The notes: generated from the sequence alone by a model not told the origin. Positions 8,367-34,076 are shown, counted from the first letter of the stretch. The stretch: DNA of 64,000 nucleotides from Selaginella moellendorffii (GCF_000143415.4 NW_003314313.1:771430-835429), one strand, 5' to 3'. A program made the numbers and translations.

Positions 8367-8416
8367 CAAGTGATGGAAACTGAATGTTCGCACCGAGGAT
8401 AGTGTCTAGTTCTGTC

Positions 8417-8427
8417 AGGGAGCAGAG
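8417..8427 (+). other. Polypurine tract of element 1
   Basis: AGGGAGCAGAG immediately precedes the LTR start TGTATC. Confidence 0.7.
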
Positions 8428-9289: not shown

Positions 9290-9425
9290 GAAGTGACTGC
9301 AAAAGAAAAAGGAAGATCTCGAGCCACGAAACCATGAATTCCAACCAGCGATGTGACCTTATTGAACCGGGAAGCGGCAGTGCGCACTCGAGTAGCAACT
9401 TTACTTGTCCCTGGAACAGCATCCA
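9290..9425 (-). pseudogene. SKP1-like (ASK20/21) gene fragment
   Basis: GCCxRDK..KLLLE.. exon piece plus retained intron, matching the gene at 41828-43357. Confidence 0.75.
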
Positions 9426-9849: not shown

Positions 9850-10130
9850 TGAAACGGCACATTAATAAGGAGGGATCATAGGCTTTAAAATTCTCATAAT
9901 ATACCATAATATAAATCGATTTGTCTTTGTAGTATTTTCATTATACAAATTGAAAAAAAGTTGTACAAGTAATATTTTCCAGTCTGTCTTAAAAGCCCCA
10001 CAATTTCCGTGAGTAAGTTTTATTGATCAGAACAGCGACACATACGTGCCAAACAAGGAGAGATCATGTGGGAGATCACTCAGTTATTCATCTTTCATCA
10101 TATGGATATAGTTTGATCATCCAAAAGGAT

Positions 10131-10559
10131 CTAGCAGCACTGGAGAACTCCCTCGACGTTCTGGATGCAATCGTCGAGGTTGCGAGTGGAAGAGACGAGA
10201 ACGCCATCCCCGCGGTTGCAACGGGCAGCCACGTTGAGCCCATTGAAGCTGATGTTGATGCATCGTGAGGCAAAGTTGGATGAGCAGTCGAGGACACCAT
10301 TGCTGCTGCCCACGCAATTGTTCACATCGATGGAGGCGTTCCTCCTTTCCATATTGGATGTGCTGCAAATGGCTCTCATCACGGTCGAATTCCTGTCGAA
10401 GGTGATATCAGTGCAGGATCGAGAAAACTGGCAAGCCTGTAAGAGTAAGATATCCAAATTGTGAGCTTCTTGCGGGACAATTGAATGAGAGTTTCTTACC
10501 TGGGTGATGGAGAGGGTCGAGACCAGCATACACAGGAAGAAAACCTCGCGAAATGCCAT
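10131..10559 (-). CDS. Secreted cyanovirin-N homolog (CVNH) lectin, copy 1; exons 10500-10559 and 10131-10436, 121 aa
   Basis: Signal peptide MAFREVFFLCMLVSTLSITQA; 63-nt GT-AG intron; FSRSC...SIDVNNCVGSSNGVL...SNFASRC...NLDDCIQNVEGVL aligns by eye with both cyanovirin-N repeats. Confidence 0.9.
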   Translation of the reverse strand: MAFREVFFLCMLVSTLSITQVRNSHSIVPQEAHNLDILLLQACQFSRSCTDITFDRNSTVMRAICSTSNMERRNASIDVNNCVGSSNGVLDCSSNFASRCINISFNGLNVAARCNRGDGVLVSSTRNLDDCIQNVEGVLQCC

Positions 10560-10642
10560 AATGAGATAGAACAAGAAATAACCAAGAAGAAAATGAGTAA
10601 ACAACTTTAACTAGAGATGAGTTGAGCTCTGGAAAGGCCTTG

Positions 10643-10650
10643 TTTATATA
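10643..10650 (-). promoter_or_regulatory. Putative TATA box of CVNH copy 1 (also in copies 2 and 3)
   Basis: TATATAAA about 85 nt upstream of the ATG, kept in all three copies. Confidence 0.55.
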
Positions 10651-11029
10651 GTCCTGGCAGCAACGCTTATCTTGACGACTCAGCAAGTACATGACTCCAC
10701 ATTGCGGCTAGAATGCAAAATTTCTACGTCGACTACATTACTATACACGTAAATATTGAAATTTAGCTCAGTTTATGATTTTTCAACGTTCCAGCCAGCT
10801 ATACACGGTGACATTTTTATGAGTTTGCGTGTTTCTTTTAATTTGCTAGACTATAAATGGGACCTTTTTGGGGCAAGACCGCTACGAAGAGACTCCAGGA
10901 GACATCGATTTCTACGTGCCCATAGATAGAATCGCGAAGATTATCCAGTGTGTCCACACTGCTGGTAGACGTAAAATCGAAAAGCACGTAAATTCCTCCA
11001 AAGATGAAGGATACTTTATCTTTGCGAGC

Positions 11030-11520
11030 CATTTAGAAGATACCGGAGCCTCCACGCTTGTTGCTCGGTACATGGTAGCGTCGTCGTCTACGTTTGTCAC
11101 TCGCCGGTGGATGATCCTCTTTCCTTTGAGCGAAGAGATCGCGATGGAGGGATAGTTGAGATTGCTGCGTCGTCGTGTGGAATAGATGGTTTCAAGTTTG
11201 CGAAAGTGGAGACGTTTCGTATTTCCTGCCTCAATCCACACAGAAAGTCCGTGCATTCGGGCGCCTTGGCATCGTAGACGAGGCCCGGATGAGCAGCCGC
11301 GTTTGGATTGATGTGGTCTCCACCGAAGGTGCCGGAGAGCAATCCTGCGTCTTTGATCGGCTCCACAGAGTTATCAGTGAGAAAACCTGCTGCAAAACAA
11401 GAGAAAAGAATCGATTGTTTTCTTCTGGAAAGCACGTAGTGTTACCTGTAGTTACGATTGCCGAATGCGGCTGGACTCCGGTAGGCCTTGTCAGAGACAT
11501 GCGGACAAGACATGGAAGTT
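11030..11520 (-). pseudogene. Subtilisin-like protease C-terminal fragment
   Basis: [28 protein letters not shown] and LNYPSIAISSLKGKRIIHRRVTNV in shifting frames. Confidence 0.85.
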
Positions 11521-11547
11521 CATAATATTGCGTATTGTTTGCGAAAG

Positions 11548-11609
11548 GTCTCCCACCAAGAAAAGGAAACCATAATGCGTATTGTCACTCCCATTCCTTG
11601 GTGGGAGAC
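11548..11609. repeat. 62-bp imperfect palindrome (also ~21135-21194 and ~40630-40690)
   Basis: GTCTCCCACCAAGAAAAGG...CCATTCCTTGGTGGGAGAC, with ATAATG/TATTGT pairing next to a very short loop. Confidence 0.75.
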
Positions 11610-11764
11610 AAGGCTTTGAGTCCATGGGAATTTGATGTGGCTCTTCTTGGTGCGTTTTAATTTCTTTTGATACATGAACTCTTCAGGTCTCACGTCAACC
11701 AAGTCTTTCTTCTCTCCATGGCAGCCAGAGATTATTCTCAGGAACCAAAGACGAGCTAAGCACC

Positions 11765-12000
11765 GGATTTGCACGTTCTTGTGTAACCTCTTGCTATCAC
11801 TATATGCCCGGTTTGGGCACATTGACGAGGCGATCAAGGTCCTTCACTCGATTCAGGATCCCAATGTCTTCTCTTCGAAAATCCTGTTTCGGGCTTTTGC
11901 GATGACCATTGCGTCTCTGGGGAGGAAAAAACCTTTAATTCTCTACAGGAGAGGGTGGACTACGATGGTGATCGCATATGCCCGCATTGGGCATATTTTG
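11765..12000 (+). pseudogene. PPR gene fragment
   Basis: FLCNLLLSLYARFGHIDEAIKVLHSIQDPNVFS...WTTMVIAYARIGH. Confidence 0.85.
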
Positions 12001-12029
12001 CGGCAAAGTTTCTCTTCACGGGCCACGGC

Positions 12030-12395
12030 GCAACCAGGTGAAATGCCTCTCGTCCACCGCGAGGTCTTGTTCAACGGATGCTGTCCCAGGGACAAGTCAA
12101 GTTAATCTCAGTTGCTACTCGAGTACGTACTGCCACACAGGTCACATCGCTGGTTGGAATTCATGGTTTCGTGCCTCGAGATCTTCCTTGGAGAGGAAGT
12201 TTTTCGATGAAAAGTTCATCCTGCTAAACCCCAAGACATTGTGTGAGCTCACGTTGGCGACTGAAAGTCTTGACATGAAACCACTGGTGGACTTGACCAG
12301 TTGACTCTAGCTCGATCAAAGGAAAGACGCCGAAAGAGATCCGGTCTGCCAGACGAACTAACAGAAGTAAGAAGCGAATGCTATCTCACAGGCAT
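12030..12395 (+). pseudogene. SKP1-like (ASK20/21) gene fragment
   Basis: PLVHREVLFNGCCPRDK, ERKFFDEKF...LCELT..SLDMKPLVDLTS*; introns retained. Confidence 0.85.
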
Positions 12396-14299
12396 GGCAA
12401 GAAGCGTCTACTCGTTAAAGAAGTTTACGAATTGCTTAATTCACAGGCATGGCGAGCTTCGTGCAGATTCATGGTGGCGTGGATGAAACTGCAGCACAGC
12501 AGAGAAGAAGCCAAATTAATGTTTGATTGCTAAAAAGGATCAAATCTCATGAACAGAGTGCTAGAAGCATCAAATTCATGATCACGGGCATTCTTTTTGT
12601 ATTGTGAAGAACATTGCTCTTTCAATTCGCTTAGGACCACAAACTGCAACTCAAGTCCGTCCACACGGAAGAGCCATCCAGCAGGCTGTCATCCGTCCAA
12701 TTAAGTAAGATGCTTCGTTTTGGACTAATTGAGAAAACTCTCCGTTTTCCCCTTTTTTCCCAGTGGTATTTAGCTCATGTTTAAAGACATATAATGGCCC
12801 CTTGTCCGGTCCACTCTGCCCAGGTAGAACGCTTCGCACCTCTCTCCACCCTCGCAAGGTAAGTTCGTTTAAGTAGGGCTTTTCTTTGAATAAGAGAGTA
12901 GATTTGCTGGGGACAATAAAGCGAAGCTGCTTGCAACGAGCTAATCAACAGTAAAAGAAGCCAGTGATAGTCAATATGTTCAAACAATTCAAAAAATCAA
13001 AGTCCTAAACAACGGGCCAAGGAACTCTCAACGTGAAGGGAAACTCACTGATGTGGACAACGCTGTTTGAATACGAACAAAACTAATGATCATTGAAAGT
13101 GACGATACTTAGCTTCAGGTTTGAGTGTGTTTCAATTTGTTCTAATTTCTTGTCATTAAGAAGGCTGCTCAACGACGATAAGAACTCAAATGCCGTGTCA
13201 CAGTGTGCCAAGATGAAAATGCTACGAGATTGGAGAGATTTTGTGTCCACGTTTTGGAGAGATGTGTTGTTGCTGCGCTCAACAAAGACCTGCGAGCTGA
13301 GAAACAACATTGCCTGTTGATCTTCAGAACTTCAATCCAGCTGAAGACGTACATGACAATGGTCCAACCTCAATGAAAACAACGATCATTGAAACTCTGA
13401 AGGCATGCAATGTGTACAGGAAGCACAGTGATCATAGCGTGAATTTACAAGAAAAGACGCTCAGATCAACTCGTATACTGTTTGCTCTAACTAAGATGTT
13501 TGCTGTTCAACGAGATGGACATCGAAGTTTAACAGGTTCGTGAACTGTTTGTTCTAACCAAAATGTTTATTCAACGAACTGGACAAAGCCCAAAAAAACA
13601 CTAGAACCTTCCAGGTCTATGTTCTCTTTAGTTTTCTTTATGGTTTCTTTAACTTCCTTTTGTTTTTGCAATGCCATGAGATTGTAACGGTGCCATAGAA
13701 CAATGTTAGATGGAAGTTTACAACCCTGTGGTTTCCTTGAAATACGTTGCAAGTAGTTGTGTCAAAAAACACCAAAGTAGCTTGTGAGCTTCCCAGCGTC
13801 TGGGCGCTGTGGCAGCTACTCAAGAGCTCGTTAAACTTCTTGTAGCTGTCCGAGCTTGAAGACCTCGGGCTCGTCACTTCCAAAACTTAGCTCAGAGGCT
13901 TCCAGGGCTGAGCATGAGCGATGAACAAGATCAAAGCTGAGATAGGAGGGGGTACTCATCTTCGCCTTGAATCTGCAGGGCCTTCTCTACTTCCGGCTTT
14001 TCCAAACAGGTCACCGTGCTCTGCCTCGGAGGTTGATGGGCTCGAGTCGCAACCAGCCATCGATCCCGAGATCCGCCACAACGGGAACGCGACATCGACA
14101 TGCATTCTGGAGGGATGGCAAAGAGCTATGGGAAGCATTGGCGAGTTTTCGCAGAAATCTCCTGCTGTGGTCTTTTTTATGTACGAGCTCGAACAAGGGA
14201 GCAATACAACCAGATCCAAAACCAAATTCCACTAAATGGATATTTCCTCTAATGTTTTGGACAGAAACAAACAAGGAAAAGAAGTTGTGCAAACATACA

Positions 14300-14650
14300 T
14301 TGGAACCATAGTCTTCGCTCCCACGCCACCGCTATAGTCTCCAGGGATCCAATCGACATCACAGGTTTGGGAGGGCGATGACGGCTATGGTCTCCATCTG
14401 GAGATGGTGATGGAGTGGCAATGGGATCCCATCGATCCTCGCATGGATTCAATTTCCTGCAGCTCCATCCCCCAATAAGGTAGAGCTTGCTGCCCAGAGC
14501 CTGGCACACGAATCCCCGTGCCTTTTGGGTATCAAAACCTCTTATCGTCCAAGCCCTGTGCGGTGTCTGGCAAATAGTCCATGGGCGATGACCAACTGCG
14601 AAAGGAGCAGCCTGCGAGGATGTGGCAATCACAGGGAAGCGCGCCGGATC
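14300..14650 (-). pseudogene. Kelch-repeat (F-box/kelch-type) fragment
   Basis: RGFVCQALGSKLYLIGGW...EDRWDPI, with the kelch GG..W pattern. Confidence 0.55.
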
Positions 14651-14659
14651 GACCGGGAA

Positions 14660-15095
14660 TGCACATTCTTGTGTAACCTCTTGCTATCACTATATACCCG
14701 ATTTGGGCATATTGGCGAGGCGATCAAGGTGTTTCACTCGATCCAGAATTCCAATCTCTTCTCCTTGAAAATCCTGTTAGGGGCATTTTGCGATGACAAT
14801 CACGTTTCTGAGGATAGAAAAACCTTTGATTCTCTGCAGGAGAGGGACGTGCTGACCTGGACTATGATGGTGATCGCATATGCCCCCATTGGGCATCTTT
14901 CGCGGAAAAGTCACGGGCCGCGCGCAACCAGGTGGAATGCCTCTCGTCCACCGCGAGGTCTTGCTCAATGGATGCTGTCCCAGGGACAAGTAAAGTTGCT
15001 ACTCGAGTACGCACTGCCGCTTCCCGGTCCGATAAGGTCACATTGCTGGTTGGAATTCATGGTTTCGTGGCTCGAGATCTTCCTTTTTCTTCTTT
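14660..15095 (+). pseudogene. PPR fragment fused to SKP1-like fragment
   Basis: FLCNLLLSLYTRFGHIGEAIKVF...RDVLTWTMMVIAY followed by NGCCPRDK / LLEY..RFP. Confidence 0.8.
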
Positions 15096-15439
15096 CAAAA
15101 CTTCCAAACCGATCCCCTCTGGCGTGAGCACGAGCAGCTCCCTCGGCCGAGGAATTTCTTCCAGTCCAGTTGCTGCTGCCTGAGTGTTTTCATCCAGCAG
15201 CCTTGCCCCGATTTCAGGAACCGCGAGGGATCCGTAATGCTGGAATCGTCGACAGCAGCGCATCCGCCATGAAGCTGTTCGTCTTGTACGCCGGGATTCG
15301 ATTGCGTGACAGCTGCTGCCGCAGAAGCTTGTGATAATCGGCATCACAAAACAAACACCAACCAATATCGTCGGCGGCTTTGTGATAGTGCGAAATCCTT
15401 TCTCGTGGCGACACCGCACGAAAAAGAAACAAAGCGAGA

Positions 15440-16400
15440 GTGATCGGTGGAAAGATGATCCAGCTCATCCATTCTCGAGCTACGAGCAGGGGTGAAGACG
15501 ATCACCTAGCGCGCAATGCACACGCCAAATGTAGAGGAATGGCGGAAGAAGCGAATGGATTCATAATCGCGCGCGTCAGAAACCAGGAAACTGAAGGTCA
15601 GGAACCTTGGACGTGTGACGTTAGACACAGCATCAGCACTTCGCAAACAAATATTCAGCACTCGTCTCGCTTGTCCTTTCCCTTTTCCCAGAGTGCTAAC
15701 TTTCACAACCGTTCCATCCAAAGCTTCTCCCACTTTTCTCTCCCAGCCAAATCTGCAAATGCTACCAAAAACCTCGAGTGCTAGCTCACTCTCCACGTTT
15801 GCAACGTATCCGAGCACTAGAACAGTCCACGAGATGACACTGTGCCGGGAGCTGGTGTCGAAAACCATGCGTGCTTCCACCATTCTTCCACAGTATGCGT
15901 ACATTTCCACCAGCGAGCTCGCTACGTGATCATCTTTGCCACTTCTCTTAGCTCAAGGGTGGATTCTCATGCCTTGTTCCAGAGCTTCCAGCTTGATCAT
16001 CTTCCCACCGATGAGTCTCACTTCTTCTCTGATCGCTAGAGCAGAGCAAGCCTCGATCGCTGCGAAGAATGTCCCGGAATCCGGTCCGCAACCCTGGCTT
16101 TCCATCCATGACAAGCCTTCCAGAGCACGAGATTCTTCGCCATTCTCAAGATGAAAGCGTTCCAGGCCACTACATTGTGGCAAGGCATCCTGTCAAACAC
16201 CTTCCTCGCCTCAACCAGGCTGCCACACCTCCCATACATGCCGATCAAGCTGCAAGAAACGTAGGATCGTGGAGCACCCTTCCCCTCTCTAAATCCTTGG
16301 AGCTCCCGCAGGATTTCAACCCCAAAAGGAGCTCCGCTGAGCAGCCTGTGCTGTGACCCAGGCATTGTCCCAGTACGGGTCGAAGGGAATGCATCCATCC
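15440..16400 (-). pseudogene. PLS-type PPR pseudogene (copy without the gypsy insertion)
   Basis: [65 protein letters not shown]; frameshifts. Confidence 0.88.
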
Positions 16401-16519
16401 ATCGAGCGCCAAAAGAATCTTTGTCGAAGAACCCTAAAATTCAGAAGAGCCCTAAAAACTGTCAACTGTCTCTAGCGAAGGACTCGCTTGACATAAACGG
16501 CTCGCAAAGATACCGCTAG

Positions 16520-17045
16520 CTCCCACCGATACGATAACACCGTCCGGAGCCTCCACGCTTGCTCGGTACGTGGTAGCGTCGTCGTCTACGTTTGTCACTC
16601 GCCAGTGGATGATCCTCTTTCCTTTGAGCGAAGAGATCGCGATGGAGGGATAGTTGAGATTGCTGGAAGCCATGCGTCGTCGTGTGGAACAGATGGTTTC
16701 AAGTTCGCGAAAGTGGAGACGTTTCGTATTTCCTGCCTCAATCCACACAGGAAGTCTGTGAATTCGGGCACCTTGGCATCGTAGACGAGGCTTGGATTGA
16801 TGTGGTCTCCACCGAAGGTGCCGGAGAGCAATGCTGCGTCTTTGATTGGCTCCCCAGAGTTATCAGTGACAAAACCTGTTGCAAAACAAGAGAAATGAAT
16901 CGATTGTTTTCTTCTGGAAAGAACATAGTGTTACCTGTAGTTACGATTGCCGAATTGATAGCGGCTGGACTCCATTCGGGACGGTATGCCTTGAGCAGTG
17001 CAACGATCTCAGAGACATGCGGACAAGACATGGAAGTTCATAATA
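16520..17045 (-). pseudogene. Subtilisin-like protease C-terminal fragment
   Basis: [32 protein letters not shown]...LNYPSI...RVTNV...YRASVEAPDGVIVSV. Confidence 0.9.
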
Positions 17046-17059
17046 CAATATTTGCGTGT

Positions 17060-17371
17060 TGTTTGCGAAAGCGAGGTGGAGTTGCTGTGGGAGCATTATA
17101 TGTGCCTGGTGGATCTGCTGGCTGGGGACGCTGCGGCTGGCTCCAGGACGCCGAGGAGCTCGTGGAGAGGATGCCGTTCGAGCAGTGCGTCACGGGCTGG
17201 ATGACGCTGCTGAGCAGGTGCCGGATGCATGGCGACGTGGAGCGGGCGGAGCGCGCCGCGGAGATGGTGGGTGAGCTCGAGCCGGCGCGCAGTCCATCTT
17301 CATGCTTGGAGCTCTCGAGAGAAGGACTGGGACATGATGAGCTTGATCAAGCGACACCTCCAGTGAGGTGA
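17060..17371 (+). pseudogene. PPR E-domain fragment
   Basis: EHYMCLVDLL..CGWLQDAEELVERMPF..WMTLLSRCRMHGDVERAERAAE. Confidence 0.85.
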
Positions 17372-17699
17372 CGAGTTTCTTCTTTCTTCGACGAGGATTA
17401 TTTTAAAGCTTCCTTTTGTGGCATCGAGAAATCAGCCACTTAGTTGCTGGGATGGAATGCTGCTCTGGGAGGCGAGATCTCGATGACCAACAAGACGAGG
17501 AGGAGGGAAATTTTTGCGGCTCGGTCATCAAATGCATCGCCCAAGTCAGGCAATCAGGCACTGTGCTGTTCGAAGAGCTCTCCAACTTACACTCAAGGGT
17601 TTGAGAGCCGGAGCAGCGCAGACGAGGTAACTCTTCCAGAGCTCGAGCGAGAGCTTGACATTGCTTGTTTGTGCTGTTCCAGGTGAGAAGGGAGATCTT

Positions 17700-18650
17700 G
17701 AGCTGGTATGATCTGGGACTCACTTACAACTCGAGCGCCACGGTCGATCACGTCATCCGAAACGATCCCTCGCTCCTCCTCATGGTGGGCGATCTCACAT
17801 ACTCGGATCAATACATCACCAATGGCACTGGATCGCCCTGCTTTAGCTGTGCACTTCCAGACGCGCCAATCCGGGAGACTTATCATCCCCACTGGGATCA
17901 CTAGGGGAGGTGAGAGAGAGAGAAAGACTATAAATCCGCAATCCAATCCCTGATTTCCTTGCTCCCAGATTCATGGAGGAGGTGCCAACCACGAGATCGA
18001 GCCCCAGGCATTGGGCAAAACATACAAGGCCAGATTCTCGGTGCCTCCTGGATCGAATTCCAGCCTTTAGTTCTCGTTCGATGTCGGCGGCATCCACTTC
18101 CTGATGCTGGGAGGATCGCGTCAACAGGCTCCTCACGCCCTGGATCGTGGCATCCGCCGTGGTACAATAGCTACAGCTCCCACTACCGCGAGGTCGAGTG
18201 CATGCGTCTCGAAATGGAGGAGCTTCTCTACAATGCCGGCGTCGACATTGTCTTCAATGGCCATGTAAATCCCTCTCTCTTCTCGATCTCGACAGGAATC
18301 CTCGGTGTTCTTCCAGGTCCATGCCTTAGAACGAGAGTGGACACGGAGGACGCTGACGATCGCCCCAAGCCTGAGGACAACGTACCCCAATTCGGTGGAG
18401 TTTGTGCTCAAAACTTCGGCTCTGAGCCAGCGGCGAATCAATTCTGCTGGGGCAGGCAGCCGGAATGGAGCGCGCTGCGAGATGGAAGCTTTGGTCACGG
18501 CCTATTGGAGGTAACCTCGAGAGTTCAACCTCTTGATTTTGCTCTTTTTCTCTTTAGGTGAAGAACAATACCCATGCCCTGTGGACGTGGTACCGCAACC
18601 AAGATGTGTATGGTGATAGTCACCTTGGAGACATTGTGAAATCACCGCAG
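17700..18650 (+). pseudogene. Purple acid phosphatase (PAP13/15/23 phytase-type) pseudogene
   Basis: DLGLTYNSSATVDHV..LLMVGDLTYSDQY...APIRETYHPHWD*, HPPWYNSYSSHYREVECMR, VDIVFNGHV, SFGHG; premature stop and deletions. Confidence 0.9.
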
Positions 18651-19018
18651 TGCCGGAACTATCCTGCTTTCCAAGCTGACGAAAGATCGGGTGGAAACAG
18701 TGGAAGTCCCTCCAGGATCTTGGGAGCTCTAGCCATTTTGATGGCAACGCTTCTAGAATTTTGAAAGTGCAGAAGTTAATAAACATTAGCATATGAAAAG
18801 AATTATCGCGAGTGAATTCCAGTACAATTGGAGAGGGAAAAGCTAACTGGAAGTCTGGTTTCCAGCCATCCAGTCAAAACTGCCGCTTTGCATGTCGACG
18901 TGGCGGTTCTTCAGTGGTTGACATTTTCTCGGCAGCATATATACGATATCAACACAAACGCTGATCATATCATCGGTCTCTCTTTGATAGATTTTCTTTG
19001 CAAGAGGAACTCTAGATC

Positions 19019-19458
19019 ATGTCTCGCGCACTAAGTTTTTTCTTCTTCTTCCTCTTGGTGGCTGCTACTGTGACCTCTCGGCCAGTGAAGAATGAAACAG
19101 GTACGCCTGTTCTTCAATCTCGATTGAATATGCCTCGCTTGGATTTGATGATCTCTGTGTTTCTTTTGAAACATCATGGTCCATGTCTGCACTCGCTTGC
19201 ATGTGTGTCTGTCCAAGCACGTAACCTGATTCATACGTGATTTAAACTTTTTGTCTTTTACAGTGATGGCTAAGATTGCTAATCAGCTGGATTGGTCGTC
19301 ATTGTCCAATTCCACCCCAAAAATTGCCGAACCAGAGGTAAAATAATCCTGTATTTGAAGACAATATTCTTGACATGTATGATCATGTGCTGTCAATCAT
19401 CTTTGGTGATCAGGAGAAGCAAGCCCATGTTGACTACATTTATGATTTTAATCCTTGA
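19019..19458 (+). CDS. Phytosulfokine-like secreted peptide precursor, copy 2 (exons 19019-19100, 19264-19337, 19414-19458; 66 aa)
   Basis: GT-AG splicing gives MSRALSFFFFFLLVAATVTSRPVKNETVMAKIANQLDWSSLSNSTPKIAEPEEKQAHVDYIYDFNP*: signal peptide, RP, acidic stretch and a PSK-type AHxDYIY. Confidence 0.8.
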
Positions 19459-19740
19459 TGAAACGGCACATTAATAAGGAGGGATCATAGGCTTTAAAAT
19501 TCTCATAATATACCTTTAATATAAATCGATTTGTCTTTGTAGTATTTTCATTATACAAATTGAAAAAAAGTTGTACAAGTAATATTTTCCAGTCTGTCTT
19601 AAAAGCCCCACAACTTCCGTGAGTAAGTTTTATTGATCAGAACAGCGACACATACGTGCCAAACAAGGAGAGATCATGTGGGAGATCACTCAGTTATTCA
19701 TCTTTCATCATATGGATATAGTTTGATCATCCAAAAGGAT

Positions 19741-20169
19741 CTAGCAGCACTGGAGAACTCCCTCGACGTTCTGGATGCAATCGTCGAGGTTGCGAGTGGA
19801 AGAGACGAGAACGCCATCCCCGCGGTTGCAACGGGCAGCCACGTTGAGCCCATTGAAGCTGATGTTGATGCATCGTGAGGCAAAGTTGGATGAGCAGTCG
19901 AGGACACCATTGCTGCTGCCCACGCAATTGTTCACATCGATGGAGGCGTTCCTCCTTTCCATATTGGATGTGCTGCAAATGGCTCTCATCACGGTCGAAT
20001 TCCTGTCGAAGGTGATATCAGTGCAGGATCGAGAAAACTGGCAAGCCTGTAAGAGTAAGATATCCAAATTGTGAGCTTCTTGCGGGACAATCGAATGAGA
20101 GTTTCTTACCTGGGTGATGGAGAGGGTCGAGACCAGCATACACAGGAAGAAAACCTCGCGAAATGCCAT
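19741..20169 (-). CDS. Secreted CVNH lectin, copy 2 (intron 20047-20109)
   Basis: Protein identical to copy 1. Confidence 0.9.
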   Translation of the reverse strand: MAFREVFFLCMLVSTLSITQVRNSHSIVPQEAHNLDILLLQACQFSRSCTDITFDRNSTVMRAICSTSNMERRNASIDVNNCVGSSNGVLDCSSNFASRCINISFNGLNVAARCNRGDGVLVSSTRNLDDCIQNVEGVLQCC

Positions 20170-20619
20170 AATGAGATAGAACAAGAAATAACCAAGAAGA
20201 AAATGAGTAAACAACTTTAACTAGAGATGAGTTGAGCTCTGGAAAGGCCTTGTTTATATAGTCCTGGGAGCGACGCTTATCTTGACGATTCAGCTAGTAC
20301 ATGACTCCACATTGCGGCTAGAATGCAAAATTTCTACGTGGACTACATTACTATACACGTAAATATTGAAATTTAGCTCAGTTTATGATTTTTCAACGGT
20401 GACATTTTTAGGAGTTTGCGTGTTTCGTTTAATTTGCTAGATTATAAATGGGATCGAAACTTAGACACCCTTTTTGGGGCAAGACCGCTCGAGACATCGA
20501 TCTCTACGTGCCCATAGATAGAATCGCGAAGATTATCCAGTGTGTCCAGCTGGTAGACGTAAAATCGAAAAGCACATAAATTCCTCCAAAGACGAAGGAT
20601 ACTTTATCTTTGCGAGCCA

Positions 20620-21110
20620 TTTAGAAGATACCGGAGCCTCCACGCTTGTTGCTCGGTACGTGGTAGCGTCGTCGTCTACGTTTGTCACTCGCCGGTGGAT
20701 GATCCTCTTTCCTTTGAGCAAAGAGATCGCGATGGAGGGATAGTTGAGATTGCTGCGTTGTCGTGTGGAATAGATGGTTTCAAGTTTGCGAAAGTGGAGA
20801 CGTTTCGTATTTCCTGCCTCAATCCACACAGAAAGTCCGTGAATTCGGGCACCTTGGCATCGTAGACGAGGCTTGGATGAGCAGCCGCGTTTGGATTGAT
20901 GTGGTCTCCACCGAAGGTGCCGGAGAGCAATCCTGCGTCTTTGATCGGCTCCACAGAGTTATCAGTGACAAAACCTGCTGCAAAACAAGAGAAAAGAATT
21001 GATTGTTTTCTTCCACGTAGTGTTACCTGTCGTTATGATTGCCGAATTGATAGCGGCTGGACTCAGGTATGCCTTCTCAGAGACATGCAGCCAAGACATG
21101 GAAGTTCATA
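20620..21110 (-). pseudogene. Subtilisin-like protease fragment
   Basis: Paralog of 11030-11520. Confidence 0.85.
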
Positions 21111-21344
21111 ATATTGCGTATTGTTTGCGAAAGATCTCCCACCAAGAAAAGAAAACCATAATGCGTATTGTCACTCCCATTCCTTGGTGGGAGACAAGGC
21201 TTTGAGTCCATGGGAATTTGATGTGGCTCTTCTTGGTGCGTTTTATACACAAACTCTTCAGGTCTCACGTCAACCAAGTCTTTCTTCTCTCTATGGCAGC
21301 CAGAGATTATTCTCAGGAACCAAAGACGAGCTAAGCTCCGGCAG

Positions 21345-21960
21345 TGCACATTCTTATGTAACCTCTTGCTATCACTACATGCCCGGTTTGGGCACATTGA
21401 CGAGGCGATCAAGGTCCTTCACTCGATTCAGGATCCCAATGTCTTCTCTTCGAAAATCCTGTTACGGGCCTTTTGCGATGACAATTGCGTTTCTGGGGAG
21501 GGAAAAACCTTTGATTCTTTACAGGAGAGGGTGGACTACGATGGTGATCGCATATGCCCGCATTGGGCATATTTTGCGGCAAAGTTTCTCTTCACGGGCC
21601 AAAATGCCTCTCGTCCACCGCGAGGTCTTGTTCAACGGATGCTGTCCCAGGGACAAGTCAAATTAATCTCAGTTGCTACTCGAGTACGTACTGCCGCACA
21701 GGTCACGTCGCTGGTTGGAATTCATGGTTTCGTGCCTCGAGATCTTCCTTGGAGAGGAAGTTTTTCGATGAAAAGTTCATCCTGCTAAACCCCAAGACGT
21801 TGGAGCTCACGTTGGCGACTGAAAGTCTTGACATGAAACCACTGGTGGACTTGACCAGTTGACTCTAGCTCGATCAAAGGAAAGACACCGAAAGAGATCT
21901 GGACTGCCAGACGAACTAACAGAAGTAAGAAGCGAATGCTATCTCACAGGCATGGCAAGA
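21345..21960 (+). pseudogene. PPR fragment plus SKP1-like fragment
   Basis: Paralog of 11765-12395. Confidence 0.82.
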
Positions 21961-22794
21961 AGCGTCTACTCGTTAAAGAAGTTTACGAATTGCTTAATTC
22001 CTGCTCGGCAGTGGACAAGGGCTCACGAGCTTCGTGCAGATTCATGGTGGCGTGGATGAAACTGCAGCACAGCACGAGGAGAAGCCAAAATAATGTTTGA
22101 TTGCTAAAAAGGATCAAATCTCAAAAACACAATGCTAGAAGCATCAAATTCATGATCACGGGCATTCTTTTTGTATTGTGAAGAACATTGCTCTTTCAAT
22201 TTGCTTAGGACCACAAACTGCAACTCAAGTCCGTCCACACGGAAGAGCCATCCAGCAGGCTGTCATCCGTCCAATTAAGTAGCTGGTAAGATGCTTCGTT
22301 TTGGACTAATTGAGAAAACTCTCCGTTTTCCCCTTTTTTCCCAGTGGTATTTAGGTCATGTTTAAGGTTCATCGTTGAAAGAACCTAAACGAACTTGGTG
22401 GAGAGAGGTGCGAAGCGTTCTACCTGGGCAGAGTGGACCGGACCGGCCAAGGGGCCAACCCAATTATGAGGGCTTTTCTTTGCGTTAGCAATAAGAGAGT
22501 AGATTTGCTGGGGACAAGAAAGCGAAGCTGCTTGCAACGAGCTAATCAACAATAAAAGAAGCCAGTGATAGTCAATATGTTCAAACAATTCAAAAAATCA
22601 AAGTCCTAAACAACGGGCCAAGGAACTCTCAACGTGAAGGGAAACTCACTGATGTGGACAACGCTGTGTGAATACGAACAAAACTAATGATCATTGAAAG
22701 TGAAGATACTTAGCTTCAGGTTTGAGTGTGTTTCAATTTGTTCTAATTTCTTGTCATTAAGAAGGCTGCTCAACGACGATAAGAACTCAAATGC

Positions 22795-23190
22795 TGCCCG
22801 ATTTGGCCATATTGTCAAGGTGTTTCGATCCAGAATTCCAATGTCTTCTCCTTGAAAATCCTGTTAGGGGCCTTTTGCGATGATAGTCGCGTTTCTGAGG
22901 AGAGAAAAACCTTTTATTCTCTGAAGGAGAGGGACGTGGTGACCTGGACTACGATGGTGATCGCATATGCCCGCATTGGGCATCTTTCGCGGAAAAGTTT
23001 CTCTTCACGGGCCGCGCGCAACCAGGTGGAATGCCTCTCGTCCACCGCAAGGTCTTGCTCAATGGATGCTGTTCCAGGGACAAGTAAAGTTGCTACTCGA
23101 GTGCGCACTGCCGCTTCCCGGTTCAATAAGGTCACATCGCTGGTTGGAATTCATGGTTTCGTGGCTCGAGATTTTCCTTTTTCTTTTGCA
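22795..23190 (+). pseudogene. PPR fragment plus SKP1-like fragment
   Basis: Paralog of 14660-15095 (ERDVVTWTTMVIAYARIGH). Confidence 0.8.
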
Positions 23191-23781
23191 GTCACTTCCA
23201 AAACTTCCAAGCCGATCCCCTCTGGCGTGAGCACGAGCAGCTCCTTCAGCCGAGGAATTTCTTCCAGTCCAGTCGCTGCTGCCTGAGTGTTTTCATCCAG
23301 AAGCCTTGCCCCGATTTTAGGAACCGCGAGGGATCCGTAATGCTGGAATCGTCAACAGCAGCGCATCCGCCATGAAGCTGTTCGTCTTGTACGCCGGGAT
23401 TCGATTGCGTGACAGCTGCTGCTGCAGAAGCTTGTGATAATCGGCATCACAAAACAAACACCAACCAATATGGTCAGCAGCTTTGTGACAGTGCGAAATC
23501 CTTTCTCGTGGTGACACCGCACGAAAAAGAAACAAAGCGAGAGTGATCGGTGGAAAGATGATCCAGCTCATCCATTCTCGAGCTAAGAGCAGGGGTGAAG
23601 ACGATCACCTAGCGCGCAATGCACATGCCAAATGTAGAGGAATGGCGGAAGAAGTGAATGGATTCATAATCACGCACGTCAGAAACCAGGAAACTAAAGG
23701 TCACGAACCTTGGACGTGTGACGTTAGCCACAGCATCAGCACTTCACAAACAAATATTCAGCACTCGTCTCGCTTGGCAAT

Positions 23782-24075
23782 TGAAGAGGTGTCGATACTC
23801 CTCTTCGCTGGAAATCTATTGTTAGAAAGAAAACAAAAGAGAAAATGGCCCGATCTCCAAGGGCTGAGAAGAAGGACAAGTGAAAGAATGTTGTGAATTG
23901 ATAAGAAAATGATGGAATGGAGATAGGGATCCATAATTCGGATTCCCCCCTTTGAAAGGCTAGTGGTTCTAACTGCTAGCATATACTATATGTTGTGCAT
24001 GATTTAATTTATGGCTCCGATGTAGCCCTGGGTTTAAGGTCGGAGTCCCCTGAGCCTGGGTTTTTGGTTGATACA
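23782..24075 (-). repeat. 3' LTR of element 2 (294 bp)
   Basis: Reverse complement of TGTATCAACC...CCTCTTCA. Confidence 0.95.
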
Positions 24076-24138
24076 CTCTGCTCTCTGACAGAACTAAATA
24101 CCATCCTCGGTGCAAACATAGTCAGTTTCCATCGCTTG

Positions 24139-26077
24139 TTATTGCTGCTACTCAAGTCGATAGAGGCGACGTTTTTGCTACGGGAGTGTAAGCTCGTGGT
24201 TAGGGACACTGTCTGGTGGATCTGTCCCATCTTCCTGGAGGTCAGCTACCTCAGCCAGCAGGGTGGTATGATCATCCTCGAGCTTCTGGTAGTGGGTGTT
24301 GAGTTCTTCATATTTGAATTTGTAGGTGAATTCATGAGCTACTGATGGGGTTGATGGCTGCTTGGAGACGATCTTCCTGATGTCCCAGAGGTCAGTGCGG
24401 ATCTGCTTCATCTCTTCGAGCTGAGTATCCAGCCGGTGGTTTAAAGGCTCATAGAATTCCTTCTTGATCGCTCCCCGGGTGTATATGAAGGAGCCTTGCT
24501 TGAGAAGATGTTGTGCAATGTCGGCTGGTGTTGGGAAGTAGTTTGCTTGCTCGTGGTGCATGCGTTGATTGAGGGCTTCAAACAACTTGCGGGTGCAGTA
24601 GCTTGGGTCCCAAAGTTTATCTTCGTACTCCTTCCTGATCTCGTCATAATCACGGCGTACCTGACTCTATGGCTGAGGCATGGCTGCTGCTCCTGCTCCT
24701 GCTCCGTGATCCTGGTGTTTCTCGCTAGGGTTCGCTGTGTTCTTGGTCCCGGGAGTTGAAATTGCTGGAGGCTGAATCTGCTTCGTTGGATGTGGGTGAT
24801 GTGGTCGGGCCAGATTCTTTGAGGTGATTGGAGATGAGCTTTTCAGTTTGATGGTGGATGAACGGCCCAGATGTGGCACTGAAATTAATTTATCCGTTGG
24901 GAAATTTTTCGCTTGGAATTTTGTTGAAGGGGTGGAATTTTTGTGAATGCTGGTCATGGTATTTGCTGGAGGAGGCATGGTTGTGTGTTCTTCAAGTGAT
25001 TGGTGAAGGTAGTCAATGTTTTCTTTTGTGGAACGTGTCGAGGAGGTCGGGGCGTTGAGAATGTTGTTCTCAGCTGGTGGAGAAATTGAGTTCTGGGCGA
25101 TCAGCTGACATTTTCCTTTGGCGATGTTGATGTGTTTGTGAGAAGTTGTTGGTTTTGGGGCTGATTCGAGTGGATGCGGGCTCTGGGGTGAGTGTGGATG
25201 GTGATGTGAGTTGTCTTCATTGTCGCTGATGATGAGGTGTTCTCGGATCAGCGGTTTGGGAGCTGGATTCACTGGTGTTTTGTGTGTGAGGCGGCGGCGA
25301 AGTGGAGTTGAATTCTTGGAGTGTTTGTTGCTGGAGCTGGTGTTGTTGGAGTGAGTTGAGCCTGATTGTTGAGATGCTGGCTTCGGTTTCTTGCTGGGAG
25401 TTGCTCCTTCTGATTCTGACTGTTCTTCAGAGCTGTCACTTTGTTCTGTGGAGTTTGTTTGGGTTGTCCACGGTTGTTTGTTGGGAAGAGCTTGGTGTAG
25501 AGCGATCAGCAGTGGGAATATTACTGTCCGCATGGTCTTCTTGTTGAGTGTGGCAAGGATGGCATGGTCGAGAAGCTTGAGAAGGAGCTCGTGGAGATGA
25601 TGAGCCACGTTCACACATTTGCCGTCGAGTAGAGCTCCGTAGACTGCTGCTGTGCGCTTGCTGATGGTGTGATCTGTTGGGCGAAGCTCGGGCTTTGAGG
25701 CGATCCATATGTTGCTCCTCGATGTCCTCCCATGTGAGTTCATCGGTAATTTTTCGATTGGCCTTGATGATTTGCTGTGGAACTTCTCTTGAAAATTTGA
25801 GCAGTCCCTTGTTGGAGATTTTGAAAATGGAGGCGATTCTTGCTGGGCTGAGGGTGATCTCGTTGGTGCCATCGGTTATGGTGCTGTTCTTGGGGTTGAA
25901 GGAGGCAGCCAGCTTCCTCGCTAGTTTTTGATCAAGGTGTGTTGAAAAGGCCTTGTGGAGGAGCTCAAATCCATGGTCCTTGAGCCAGGTGGCTATGTCG
26001 TTGTTGGGAAGCCTAGGAATATGGTGTATGACGTATTTGAGGCCCTGGGGTGGATGAGCTGGCATCTTTCTCTTCAT
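24139..26077 (-). pseudogene. Extra 3' ORF of element 2 (frameshifted by a small deletion)
   Basis: ORFs 25436-26077, 24667-25872 and 24178-24585 are paralogous to 6417-8366. Confidence 0.6.
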
Positions 26078-26439
26078 TTTCTGTGGTTGAAGCGCTCACC
26101 CTATTAGGGTTCTTGAAACCTGTAACTGTTGGTTGGCTGATCGTGTGGCACTCGATTGCTGGTGATGAATGGTAGAGATTTGTTGACGGAATTGATGTGG
26201 TTTGATTTGGCTTGATTGCAGATCAATGGTGGATATTGCTGATGAAGTTAACTCAAGTTCAAGTGTTGATATTTGCTCAGGTGGCATTGATCCAACGGTA
26301 GCTTGGGACTTAGAGATTTTTGCTGCTGTTTGTTGCTGAAGTTGGTGGATGAGTTCGTGTTGAGTTGAGTTGAGTTGTGTCGAATTGATTTGAGTTAAAG
26401 TTTGTCTGCTGGGGTGAGTGTCGATTGTTGGTTTTGGGG

Positions 26440-29400
26440 TGTTTGTCGGTTTGGGTCGGAAATTTGCTGAGGTGCTGATGCTGAATCTGTCGATGTGATA
26501 TGGTTGAAGCTTGTTAAGGTTGACGATCTCAGTAAAGTCTTCAGCGAGTGTGCTGACTTTGGCAGTGCTGTTGGGGTATAGTTCAATGATTTTGAAAGGT
26601 CCTTGCCAGTTGGTGTGGAGTTTTCGTCCAAGTTTGCCGATGGGTCCTCGGTACCAGAGAACATGATCGTCGACGCTGTATTTGGGTGTTATGCTGGGAT
26701 GCTTTTCGGTCGTGCCGAGCTTTTCTCTGTTTTTGGATCGCATGAAGTGTCCAGAGGGTGTTGAGTCAGAGTTCATCGAGATGTTCAAGTTGCTGAAGCC
26801 TTTCTTGAACTGCATGTCGGGTGTAGAGATTATACTTGACAGTGACTTGCATGCTTGGGATGATGAATTTGATTGGCGTGATGGCTTCTGTTCCGAAGGT
26901 GAGTTTGAATGGCATCATGTCGGTGGTGACTTTATACGTAGTTTGATAGGCCCAAAGTACATCGAGAAGTTTGTCGTCCCAATCTTTGCCTAAATCGTTG
27001 ATGACTTTTTTGAGGATGGTCTTCAGTGTTTTGTTCATTGCTTCTTCTTGACTGTTGCCTTGAGGATAGTATGGTGTCGACATTTTGTGTCAGATTTTGA
27101 ACTCGGTGGCGAGATGTTCGATTGTTTGGTTGATGAAGTGGGTGCCTCTGTCGGTGACGAGTTTGAGTGGTGTGCCGAAACAAGTGATGATATTTTCGTA
27201 GATGAAGGTTGCTGTTGCTTTCGCTGTGGCATGTCGGAGAGGTATTGCTTCGGCCCACTTGGTAGTGTAATTGGTGGTGACGATGATGTACTGATTTTGT
27301 CGACGGGTGCTGACTTGGGGTCCGACGAAGTCGAGTCCCCATTTCTGAAATGGTGCCATTGGGAATGTTGGGTTGAGTTGTTGAGTCTGAGTTTTCGGCG
27401 GTAATCGGTGTCTTTGACATGTGTCGCAGCGTTTGCAGAATTCTTCAGTGTCATGCCAGAGTGTCAGCCACTAGAGGCCGGCTTGAAGAATCTTCCGAGT
27501 TGTGGTGTCAGCGGCAAAGTGTCCGCTGGAAGGTCCATCGTGAGCTTCCTTGATGATTTGAGTTGTGCTTGGTGGCTTGATGCATCGGCAAAGAATGTTT
27601 TCAATTCCTAGTTTGTAGAGAGTGCCTCCGATGACTGAGTATCGTCGGGTTTTAGCAACAAAAGTCTTCTTTTGGTTAGATGTAGTGTACTGATCTGGAA
27701 CTTTTGCTGAGTTCAGGTAACTGAAGACATTGTCGAGCCAGGTTGCTGGTATTGAAACTCGGAATAGGTTTGAGTCGGGTAAGTCGTCGGTAAGTCTTTC
27801 GGGTTTGTCGCCGGTGGTGATCCGGCTGAGATAATCTGCTTGCTCGTGATTTTTGCCGGGTTTGTGGACGATCTCGAAGTTGTATTCTTGTAGTAAAAGG
27901 AACCATCTTGATATTCAACCAGATAGTATCGGCTTGTTGATGAGGTTAAGGAGTGCCTTGTGGTCGACGAAAATTATGACTTTGGTTGACAGTATGTAGT
28001 GTCGGAACTTCTGAAGTGAGTAGATCATGCCGAGAGCTTCTTTCTCGGTGGTGGTGTAATTTCGTTCAGCTGGGTTGAGTAGTCGGGCTGGCGTAGTAGA
28101 TCGGTTGATCTCGGTTGTCGTGTTGAGTTTGGCTGAGAATTGCACCAGTGGCGACGTTGGAAGTGTCGACATGAATGTGGAACTCTTGTGTCCAGTCGGG
28201 CTTGGCAAGGATCGGTGCTGTTGTTATTTTGAGTCGGAGATTGTCGAATGCTTGTTGCTGTTCGGACGTCCATGTCCATTGGGCATCTTGTTTCAGTCCA
28301 TCGGTGAGTGGTTTGGTGATGTGAGCATACTTGTGGATGAATCGTCGGTGATATCCAACTTTGCCGAGGAAGCACCGAAGTTCTTTCTGATTCTTCGGCG
28401 GTTCAAGTTTGGAGATGATGTCAACTTTGTCCTTGTCGATGAGAATGCCGTCTTTGCAGACAACATGGCCGAGAAGTACTCCAGATTTGACAAAGAAAGC
28501 ACATTTGTCGGGGTTGAGTGCTATGTTGTTCTCCTTTCACTTGTTGAGGCATTTCTCCAGGCATTCAAGATGTAGATCTTCCGAGCTGAAAACGCTGAAT
28601 TTGTCCATGAAGTCTCTCATGAAGTCGGTGAGGTAGTCTCAGAAAGTGTTGGTGACGAGCCTTTGGAAGGTGAATGGGGCATTGCAGAGTCCAAAAGGCA
28701 TTCGTCGATAAGCATAGGCTCCCCATGGACTGATGAATGCTGTCTTGTGCTGATCTTCTTCAGCAATGTGAATTTGGTTGTAGCTAGAGAAACCATCGAG
28801 GAAGGAGTACATCTTGTGTCTGGCAACTGCATCAAGAACTTCGTCGGTAAATGGTATTGGGAAGACATCTTTTTTGGTGGCATCATTGAGCTGTTTATAG
28901 TTGATGCAGATTCGAAGTTTGCCGTTTTTGTTCGGCACAACCACCAGTGGTGAAAGCCATATCGGATTCTGAATTGGGTAGATGTACTTGACTTAGAGAA
29001 GCTTGTCGAGTTTTTCTTTACTTGTTCCATCAAATTTGGATTCATCCGGTAGGCTGCTTGTCTTCTTGGTTTTGAGTCTGGAAGAAGGGTGATGGTGTGA
29101 GGGCTGAGTTTTGGCGAAATTCCCTTAAGGTCTCAATAACTCCAAGTGAACAAGTGTTTCTTCTTTCGGAGAAGATTGATGCCTTTGTCTCAAAAACTTG
29201 CCGAGATGTTAGTGGCAAGTACAATGTAGTGTTCATTGCCGTCGTCGGCGAGGCTGACTTTTTTGAGTTTTTGGTCAGCTGGAATTGACGGAATGTAGGC
29301 GACTTTATTGTGGTTGTTGACTGTGAATGCCGGTGGTGCTTCAAGTTTTGTATCTTGAGTGATTGGATTTTTCAGTGCTGATGTAATTAGGGGTCGTTCT

Positions 29401-31749
29401 CGTTGGAAGTCAACGACGATTCGAAATAGGCCGATCTCGGCCAAAGGTTTGAGATCGGGGTAGGCTTTGAGAATTTGTTGTTCTTCATAGTCGTCAAGGC
29501 CATCTTCGAGATTATATTCTTCCAAGTCAATAGGTCGGTTGTGGCTGGACAACGATTTGGTCACTTTTGTTGACATGGTTGTCGGTCCGTCTGGTCCTCG
29601 AAGGATAAGATTGTCATTGGGCCAATCTTGATAAACTTGGGCAGTTCGGAGCCAAGGTCAACCGAGGAGAATTGAGTATCCATCAGTCTGCTCCGGTAGT
29701 TTGAGGACGACATAGTTGACTGGTATTTCGACGCCTTGAATGGTGGTGTTGACTTTTCGGATGATGCCTTTGGGTTGAACAGATCGGTGGTTGGCCATTC
29801 GGACATTGAAAGGTGCTGGGTGGACTGGGCCGATGTTGAGTTGTTGTACAAGACTTTCTTCAATAATATTAACACTGGAGCCGCTGTCAATTATGGCTCC
29901 TCGAACAAGGTGTTTGTCGAGTCGTAGGTCAATTGTTAGAACATCATTGTCACAATCCCCTGGTTGAATCTTAGTTTGAAATATGTCAACAGTTGTCTGT
30001 GTCGAGTTGAGTGTGGACAAGTCTGTCAAAGTGTTGGTCGGTGCAAATGTCAGATCGGTGAGCTGTTTGGTGAGGTAGGGTGCAATCTTCAGCAGTTGGC
30101 CAATGGTGATCTGAATATTTTGGTTGAGGATAGTCTCTGCTACTTCTTAGATTTTGTTGAAGTTTGCCAAATTGTGTTCTGGTGTCAGTGTCGATGTTGG
30201 ACGATTTGTCTGTCAGTTTTCTCGTATTGAGTCTTGGCATTGTTGTCGAGCTGGTGATGGTTGAGCTTCATTGTCGGAGTCTAAAATCACTAATTCGGGT
30301 GGTTGTAGAGCGAGTTGCCATTGTATCTTGGCGGCTAACTTCTGCTTCTTTTTCCATTCCCGGAGTTTTGTTAGGCTCTCAGGGCCTTTCTCTTCACTAT
30401 CTCCGGAATCTCTGTCCGGTTGTTGTTGTTTTTCTGCTTGAATTTGTGCTCGAGTTTGTACTGCCATGACTTGAGGATCTGAGTCGTCATTGTTGGCATA
30501 AGGTAGTTCGTCGGTCTCGACCATCCTTGTTATTGGTGGTTGCTGCTGGTTCTAATCTTGTTGTCGAGGAGGCGGCGGACCAAGTCTTGGCGGACCGCCT
30601 TGGTTTTGAAGTTGAGGTTGCCATGGTCGATTGTTGTAGTTGCCTTGGTAGCCCTGGTCTTGATAACCTTGGCCTTGGTATCTTCGGTTCTGGTATCTTG
30701 GGTATTGTTGGTATCCTTGGTTGTAGTTGTCGCGGTTTGCTAGGTAGTTCTAGTTCAGCGGGTATTGTCGATCGTTGTAGTTGTTTAGCGAGGTTGATCA
30801 TTCCATTGTCGACTCTGGTGTTGGAAGTTGTTTCTCGGTGGTCTCCAATTTGTCGGAGGTGGTGGCTGGTAATTGTCGAAGTATTGATTGGATATGGTTG
30901 TCAAAACTGTTGTCGGGGATAGTTCGAGACTTGTCGAACTTCTGGAGAATTTCGAAATCTGCAAGTCTTGGCGTCATGACCTTCTTTGGTACAGATCTGG
31001 CATTTGGAGATTTGGAGCTTGCAGTCACTTGCCGGATGTCCTTCGTTCTTGCACTTAGTACACCAAATTCCAGATTGAAATTCTTTGATGTCGGCCTTGG
31101 CTTTTCCATTGAGCTTGTTGATTGTTTTCCTGAGTTTCTGAAGTTTTGACTTGGTGCTCTCTCCGAGTTCATCGTCGGAGTCGTCATTGGAACTACTATC
31201 AGAATCTGAGTTATTTGTGTCATCTACTTGTGCTGTCATTTGTCGAGCTTGAACATCTTGAAGGGCTCTTGTGAGTTCGAGGTAAGTGGCAATGTTGATG
31301 TGTGTTGCCACTTCTCAGAGGGATCGTCGGAGGCCTTGCATGTACCATTGGTAAAGTAATGTTTCGGTGGCACTGTTGCCGCATTTGCTGGCATGTCGAG
31401 TGAAGGTTTGAGTGTAGTCATTGATGGATTGACCAGACTTCTGCTTGAGTTTTTGGATCTTGTGAAGTCGTTGGCTTTGAGTGAGGGAAGACTTGAATCG
31501 GTCTACGAGCTTGAGTGCGAGGTCGTCGAAACTTGTATTTTGAGGAAGCATTTGAGCCCATTCGTTGGCTCTCTTTCGAAGGGTACATCGGAAGTAGTAT
31601 GGAAGTTTGGTTGTCTGGCCATTGATTCGAATTGCTTCTCGGAACTGTTCAACATGTTTCTCGGCATCTTCTGACTTCAGACCATGAAATAGTGGATAGG
31701 AGACGTATCTTCCGACAGGTATGTTGGCAACAGCAGTAGTGACTGCCAT
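26440..31749 (-). pseudogene. gag-pol of element 2, disrupted
   Basis: gag 31315-31749, CCHC 30901-31311, protease 29658-30029, RT 28639-28944, integrase 26766-27359. Confidence 0.93.
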
Positions 31750-34074: not shown

Positions 34075-34076
34075 AA

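Follow-up and report, generated by a model that had tools for sequence, protein, structure and literature searches.

The pair formed by a phytosulfokine (PSK)-like peptide gene and a CVNH lectin gene in Selaginella moellendorffii belongs to a segment of ~8 kb that is tandemly triplicated within a stretch of 64 kb (hereafter, the window). This locus probably carries a highly expressed, concertedly evolving gene for a secreted CVNH protein as its cargo, with the peptide gene as a passenger. A previous reading of the same DNA, made from the sequence alone (the sequence-only reading), had proposed a secreted signaling/defense module, amplified and kept under dosage selection. The evidence presented below favors a lectin array with a hitchhiking neighbor over such a co-functional module.

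Organization of the tandem array

Self-comparison of the window located the pair at three places, namely 9425-10559 (copy A), 19019-20169 (copy B) and 38493-39633 (copy C), as the sequence-only reading had described. The peptide gene on the plus strand and the CVNH gene on the minus strand are arranged tail to tail, and the distance between their stop codons, anticipated at ~280 nt, proved to be 282 nt; the exons, the GT..AG introns and the Pfam match of the CVNH product are all in accordance with this layout.

The repeated unit is not the 1.2-kb pair itself but a segment of ~8 kb, and the array represents a tandem triplication within transposon-rich DNA (Table 1). Units B and C abut, the former ending at 22794 and the latter starting at 22797, with the right end of unit C at about 41694, while an insert of 1.5 kb (13193-14697) lies between units A and B. 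In each unit, a 5′-truncated purple acid phosphatase fragment is located upstream of the peptide gene, and fragments of subtilase, PPR and purple acid phosphatase genes were observed around the pairs, along with an LTR retrotransposon. Beyond 41 kb and within the flanks, most large ORFs were without a Pfam match.

A repeat of ~0.5 kb, which contains a pseudogene fragment of a subtilase C-terminus (fn3_6), was observed at 11043-11547, 16544-17071, 20631-21133, 35248-35765 and 40146-40461. Its copies, in direct orientation, flank the pair in units B and C and could act as a substrate for unequal crossing-over. A weak PPR-repeat ORF fragment was also noted in the left part of unit B (14525-15124, plus strand), with an E value of about 6e-5, under the Pfam cut-off.

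Table 1. Features of the window, with positions counted from its first nucleotide.
Feature	Position	Strand	Description
Tandem unit A	9425-13193		Left part replaced by inverted duplicate of the retrotransposon and some flank
Tandem unit B	14697-22794		~8.1 kb; PPR-like and subtilase fragments, phosphatase fragment, gene pair, second subtilase fragment
Tandem unit C	22797-41694		Order of parts as in unit B; broken by the LTR retrotransposon at 23774-34369
LTR retrotransposon	23774-34369		10.6 kb; 302-bp LTRs, 94.7% alike; inside unit C
Peptide gene remnant, copy A	9425-9491, 9655-9728, 9805-9849	+	Without first 15 nt, ATG and promoter
Peptide gene, copy B	19019-19100, 19264-19337, 19414-19458	+	3 exons, 66 codons, intact
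Peptide gene, copy C	38493-38574, 38728-38801, 38878-38922	+	Intact
CVNH gene, copy A	10559-10500, 10436-10131	-	Coding sequence same as copy B
CVNH gene, copy B	Exon 1 20169-20110, exon 2 20046-19741	-	63-nt intron, 121 codons; read 5′ ends at about 20212-20215
CVNH gene, copy C	39633-39574, 39510-39205	-	Same as copy B, including intron
Spacer between the two stops, copy B	19459-19740		282 nt; CVNH 3′ UTR and presumably peptide gene 3′ UTR
Purple acid phosphatase fragment, unit B	about 17710-18764		5′-truncated; upstream of peptide gene
Subtilase fragment, unit B	20536-20954	-	C-terminal part, upstream of lectin gene; fn3_6, E 5e-8

The retrotransposon and its inverted duplicate

The retrotransposon that interrupts unit C has a counterpart at the left end of the window, where positions 1-9425 form an inverted copy of positions 23063-32483 with 97% identity, comprising most of the element together with a one-sided flank of about 0.7 kb. 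Since about 0.7 kb of host flank accompanies the inverted copy, the latter represents a segmental inverted duplication and not a second insertion. An integrase core domain was identified in the inverted copy by Pfam (5133-5723). The element displays a very strong strand asymmetry, with a GC skew of about -0.3 and an AT skew of about +0.3 over 8 kb, which is mirrored in the inverted copy. Insertion of a transposable element into the copy A peptide gene was considered and ruled out: the adjoining DNA is the inverted duplicate of the retrotransposon plus flank, rather than a clean element end.

The CVNH lectin gene

The product of the CVNH gene consists of a signal-like stretch of 20 residues, encoded by exon 1, followed by a single CVNH domain of 101 residues, and contains 10 Cys in all. 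The match to the Pfam CVNH family (PF08881) covers profile positions 1-102 of 102, with an E value of 8.9e-21 and a score of 75 bits versus a cut-off of 24.5. All four canonical cyanovirin-N Cys (pairs 8-22 and 58-73) are matched in the alignment, and six Cys are extra. Prediction of the structure with a 70-sequence alignment yielded a model with a pLDDT of 95; prediction of the domain from the single sequence reached a pLDDT of 39. The predicted structure comprises the two pseudo-symmetric beta-sheet halves of the cyanovirin fold. The best 25 PDB matches of the model were all cyanovirin-N or CVNH proteins, with TM scores of 0.70-0.86 among the monomeric chains and of 0.80-0.86 for cyanovirin-N and the fern protein CrCVNH (2jzj; TM 0.84, rmsd 1.8). 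Judging from fold and family, the product is most likely a disulfide-rich lectin for high-mannose-type glycans that would serve in extracellular defense.

The six extra Cys are found at positions 2, 41, 50, 90, 100 and 101 of the mature lectin. Because Cys 41/50 and Cys 90/100 occupy equivalent places in the two pseudo-symmetric halves, each half seems to have gained a disulfide of its own, with a further one tying the termini. Three N-x-S/T sequons were also observed in the mature lectin.

The phytosulfokine-like peptide gene

The peptide gene is a real, spliced gene and belongs to a peptide family of Selaginella in which the pro-region varies. The two introns of copy B measure 163 and 76 nt, both bounded by GT..AG. 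The precursor translated from copy B has a hydrophobic N-terminus that resembles a signal peptide (as judged by eye), a short pro-region and the C-terminus EKQAHVDYIYDFNP (AHVDYIYDFNP). The inference of secreted products is supported, the N-termini being signal-like in the two cases, and both genes are real.

In terms of size and layout, the 66-codon precursor, with its motif only two residues from the end, is of the small secreted type. The YIYTQ sequence preceded by Asp that defines PSK is absent: the Asp and the YIY are present, and the following TQ is replaced by DF (D-YIYDF) in all five copies of the gene, i.e., the three of the window and two others at loci L001 and L002, described below. 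Pieces of the peptide gene (its single exons, the ORF of exon 1 and an unspliced stretch that terminates in exon 3) produced no Pfam match, although pieces of 14-27 residues hold little information.

The sequence-only reading had described the genes of all three window pairs as apparently intact, which holds for every CVNH copy and for peptide genes B and C, but not for the peptide gene of copy A. In the latter, homology starts at codon 6; the upstream DNA is unrelated, lacks an ATG and contains an in-frame stop (9335-9337), and the break is the junction with the inverted duplicate. The copy A peptide gene is dead. Copy C differs from copy B by 5 amino-acid changes and a 10-nt deletion in intron 1, and the peptide gene of L001 is frameshifted by a 1-nt deletion in exon 2. 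The peptide gene is thus dead in A and L001, two of the five copies, and intact in B, C and L002. The sequence QAHVDYIYDF is invariant across the copies, with two synonymous changes only, and the pro-region is variable. Since the gene is intact in B, C and L002 with an unchanged C-terminal motif, it is itself probably under selection on its mature part, although the numbers are small.

Paralogous loci and origin of the pair

A word search with CVNH exon 2 retrieved two S. moellendorffii proteins, SELMODRAFT_411931 (98% identity; locus L001) and SELMODRAFT_428470 (90%; locus L002), both annotated as cyanovirin-N domain proteins. Further relatives, detected by exhaustive search, were Selaginella paralogs of 53% and 36%, followed by fungal and fern CVNH proteins of about 30-38%. 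The three CVNH copies of the window were not in the protein collection searched, and no gene record was found for the 36% paralog (P0004).

L001 and L002 each contain the same pair in the same arrangement as in the window, and five pairs were found in all. The context is fullest at L002, in which cytochrome c is followed by the CVNH gene and then, on the opposite strand, by the peptide gene and an intact gene for a purple acid phosphatase of 550 aa. At L001 and in the window copies, the phosphatase gene is reduced to its 3′ part. The difference between L002 and the window copies amounts to about 6% and is even over all parts. All five pairs descend from one ancestral neighborhood that comprised cytochrome c, the CVNH gene, the peptide gene and an intact phosphatase gene.

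Pairing elsewhere in the genome had been put forward as a check on the proposed module. It was indeed detected at L001 and L002; yet, since all five pairs derive from a single ancestral pair by copying, their recurrence does not provide independent evidence of co-function, and the other CVNH loci (L003-L005) lack the peptide gene: no peptide ORF with the motif DY[IVLM]Y was found within 10 kb on either side of them. At these three loci (L003:8750-10413, L004 and L005:8923-10413), the CVNH paralogs (53%) are arranged head to tail in tandem pairs, with about 0.7 kb between a gene of 120 and one of 119 residues. L002 and L005 share a scaffold, at a distance of about 270 kb.

A likely history of the locus would start from the ancestral arrangement, which would survive at L002. 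A piece of ~3 kb from an L002-type locus (phosphatase 3′ part, peptide gene and CVNH gene) would have been copied elsewhere, giving rise to L001 and to the window locus. We infer that the piece in the window was then amplified to three units, probably via unequal crossing-over between repeats, and that its CVNH copies would be held identical by gene conversion over a tract of ~0.85 kb. The peptide gene would be a passenger in the array, decaying in some copies, barely expressed and positioned outside the homogenized tract, and the tail-to-tail layout would represent an inherited neighborhood rather than a functional cassette.

Alternatively, a mobile element may have captured host fragments and spread the ~3-kb piece, in which case the recurrence would reflect transposition and neither selection nor unequal crossing-over. 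The presence of the piece at two or more non-allelic loci (at least L001 and the window), together with the truncated phosphatase fragment, would be consistent with such an origin, as would the direct subtilase repeats of ~0.5 kb that flank it in the window (16544-17071 and 20631-21133) and the LTR elements that adjoin the units. However, no terminal repeats or target-site duplications were found to bound the ~3-kb piece, the direct contact of units B and C (22794/22797) is what tandem duplication would produce, and the introns kept in both genes argue against an RNA intermediate. Spread by a mobile element is hence unlikely, and tandem amplification of a copied segment is the preferred account.

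A homogenized tract centered on the lectin gene

The distribution of differences among the copies is highly uneven. Between copies B and C, none of the 757 positions over 19459-20215 is substituted, versus 64 of 1837 in the flanks (3.5%; p 4e-10), and between copies A and C, the corresponding counts are 3 of 756 over the tract versus 45 of 1146 in the flanks. The homogenized tract, ~0.85 kb in length, is centered on the CVNH gene and covers its transcription unit and the spacer. The CVNH intron and the 282-nt spacer are likewise identical between B and C, such that coding constraint alone is not the explanation; the likely cause is gene conversion or else the very recent replacement of a single tract. 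The body of the copy C peptide gene lies outside the tract and carries 12 substitutions and a 10-nt indel.

None of the five CVNH copies is disrupted, and each retains the 10 Cys. Between copy B and L002, 14 nonsynonymous and 5 synonymous codon changes were counted; the changes between the older paralogs are mostly replacements, as is usual for fast-evolving secreted proteins, and replacement is near the neutral rate. The dosage selection that had been suggested for the entire module may apply to the lectin gene, with its three identical coding copies, homogenized tract and very high expression, but would not extend to the peptide gene. Within the amplified pair, selection, if any, would act on the lectin gene alone.

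Expression and transcript ends

The expression data comprised three RNA sets and one set of DNA contigs (X15); among these, X23 consists of stranded raw reads and X1 of contigs. The CVNH gene is transcribed at a very high level from a TATA-bearing promoter. In X23, its depth reaches about 720, all on the minus strand, and 510 reads span the 63-nt intron. The transcripts start at 20212-20215, with a major end at about 19678 and a minor one at about 19617, which places their 3′ ends 159-220 nt short of the peptide stop. Upstream of the 5′ ends, TATATAAA is located at 20260-20253 on the minus strand and is common to all three window copies. All 18 X23 reads over position 19614 carry a T, a base that, of the five copies compared, only copy A has; accordingly, the CVNH gene of copy A, or an unsampled copy or allele with that base, is transcribed. 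Over the identical part, reads from copies B and C are indistinguishable from those of copy A.

The peptide gene received no reads in X23 and X24, and in the stranded X23 no plus-strand RNA was detected over the peptide gene or the spacer. In X1, both exon joints of the peptide gene (19100/19264 and 19337/19414) are present at contig depths of 10-19, and the summed depth of the CVNH contigs exceeds 100,000. The lack of intron contigs in X1 argues that the set derives from RNA, although it is filed under another organism label and its record is silent on RNA. With a constant mRNA ratio of ~1:10,000, zero peptide reads would also be expected in X23; the levels of the two genes are thus very unequal, which does not imply independence. 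An mRNA that skips exon 2 (19100/19414) was observed in X1 beside the full form; the skip shifts the frame, such that the DYIYDF motif would not be made.

The sequence-only reading had also suggested that the 3′ UTRs of the two genes overlap. One X1 contig (19412-19690) is consistent with this suggestion: it runs unbroken from the exon-3 acceptor, where the splice forms converge, into the CVNH 3′ UTR, with intron 2 uncovered. As the contigs are built of 31-letter words, the bridge requires an overlap of ~30 nt between the transcripts of the two genes. X1 therefore points to a likely, small overlap at the 3′ ends, although its contigs are strandless; in the stranded X23, on the other hand, the CVNH transcripts end short of the peptide gene and plus-strand RNA is lacking.

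Low cover of the phosphatase fragment was also evident in X23 (18387-18734, plus strand; depth 2-5), with a spliced GT..AG intron of 47 nt (18509-18555). Several mismatches in these reads suggest an intact paralog as their source; the fragment itself may also be transcribed.

Relation between the two genes

According to the module hypothesis, the two genes would be co-regulated, or would regulate each other via overlapping 3′ ends as a cis natural antisense pair, and would have been amplified as a whole for dosage. In favor of such a module, all five copies retain the arrangement and the 282-nt spacer, which is well conserved, and each of the two products appears to be secreted. The X1 contig that leads from the exon-3 acceptor into the CVNH 3′ UTR, with its overlap of ~30 nt, makes the joint 3′ end the only part of the idea with some support. 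These features are offset by the descent of all five pairs from a single ancestral pair and by the unequal fate of the partners: the peptide gene has died in two of the five pairs and the CVNH gene in none, and the homogenized tract omits the peptide gene body of copy C. Moreover, in X23 the CVNH transcripts stop 159-220 nt before the peptide stop, no peptide read accompanies a CVNH depth of ~700 and plus-strand RNA is absent, while the remaining CVNH loci do without a peptide gene. We regard a co-functional signaling/defense module as quite improbable, and the lectin array with a hitchhiking neighbor remains the favored description. The peptide gene may nevertheless be linked with the lectin gene in some way, since it is intact in B, C and L002. 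It is highly doubtful that the locus acts as a convergent switch, in which massive lectin transcription into the peptide 3′ end would silence the peptide gene, or the reverse, so as to separate growth-peptide from defense-lectin states, with amplification strengthening the switch.

Authenticity of the three copies

The published S. moellendorffii assembly holds both haplotypes, and haplotypes or collapsed repeats joined in tandem could in principle mimic an amplification. In this respect, copies A and B are nearly alike over the pair, and the sole DNA contig compared, from X15 (depth 3.5), carries copy C variants and matches copy C only. The units are, however, adjacent direct repeats in continuous sequence, with an N count of 0 across the window, and each has junctions of its own, i.e., the inverted-duplication break in A, the 1.5-kb insert between A and B and the 10.6-kb retrotransposon in C. 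The different flanks and junctions of each copy indicate that the three are not one sequence written three times. In addition, the flanks differ by 2-13% in substitutions, and independent RNA and DNA data contain variants that are specific to copy A and variants that are specific to copy C. An assembly artifact, which the sequence-only reading had named as a possible objection, is very unlikely, and the triplication is taken here as genuine.

Comparison with known systems

The window lectin resembles the CVNH lectins of seedless plants (CrCVNH of Ceratopteris richardii, 2jzj; PF08881) in having a single domain of ~100 residues behind a signal peptide, in the alignment of the four canonical cyanovirin-N Cys and in its predicted fold (TM 0.84). 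It differs from them in its six extra Cys and in its low identity (27-31%) to the solved CVNH proteins, as well as in the occurrence of its gene in three identical tandem copies with very high mRNA levels; its sugar binding is putative. In the manner of tandem defense-type families that evolve in concert by gene conversion, the array displays three units, an identical tract on one gene and diverging flanks, although it is small and the defense role of the lectin is presumptive. Likewise, the pair shares with the convergent cis natural antisense pairs of plants its tail-to-tail layout, its short spacer and one run that suggests a 3′ overlap, but differs from them in that the peptide partner is silent in the stranded X23 and the overlap is suggested by strandless contigs.

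The peptide gene has much in common with the PSK precursors (YIYTQ, PF06404), including a small precursor with a signal-like start, a variable pro-region and the sequence H-x-D-Y-I-Y near the C-terminus. Unlike PSK, it has DF in place of TQ at positions 4-5 of the motif, which is followed by only two residues. PSK genes have been reported from gymnosperms upward (PMC13074997) and are putative in a moss and a liverwort, and a tyrosylprotein sulfotransferase has been reported in S. moellendorffii (PMC8462819); PSK from Selaginella is reported in neither of these two papers (PMC13074997, PMC8462819).

Should the interpretation advanced here be correct, the locus would contain no new system, and would instead provide a small and clear example of a tiny, highly expressed lectin gene that has been multiplied and, by gene conversion, kept uniform in decaying repeat DNA, and of a neighboring gene that rides along and decays. 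The peptide gene would be the more interesting partner, independently of the lectin gene, since the papers cited above date PSK to seed plants. The gene set on record for this model lycophyte seems to lack both the window CVNH copies and the adjoining PSK-like genes. At L002, the gene call for the 550-aa phosphatase (10516-13504) spans the peptide gene (about 10730-11230, same strand), which seems to have been swallowed by the model of its neighbor.
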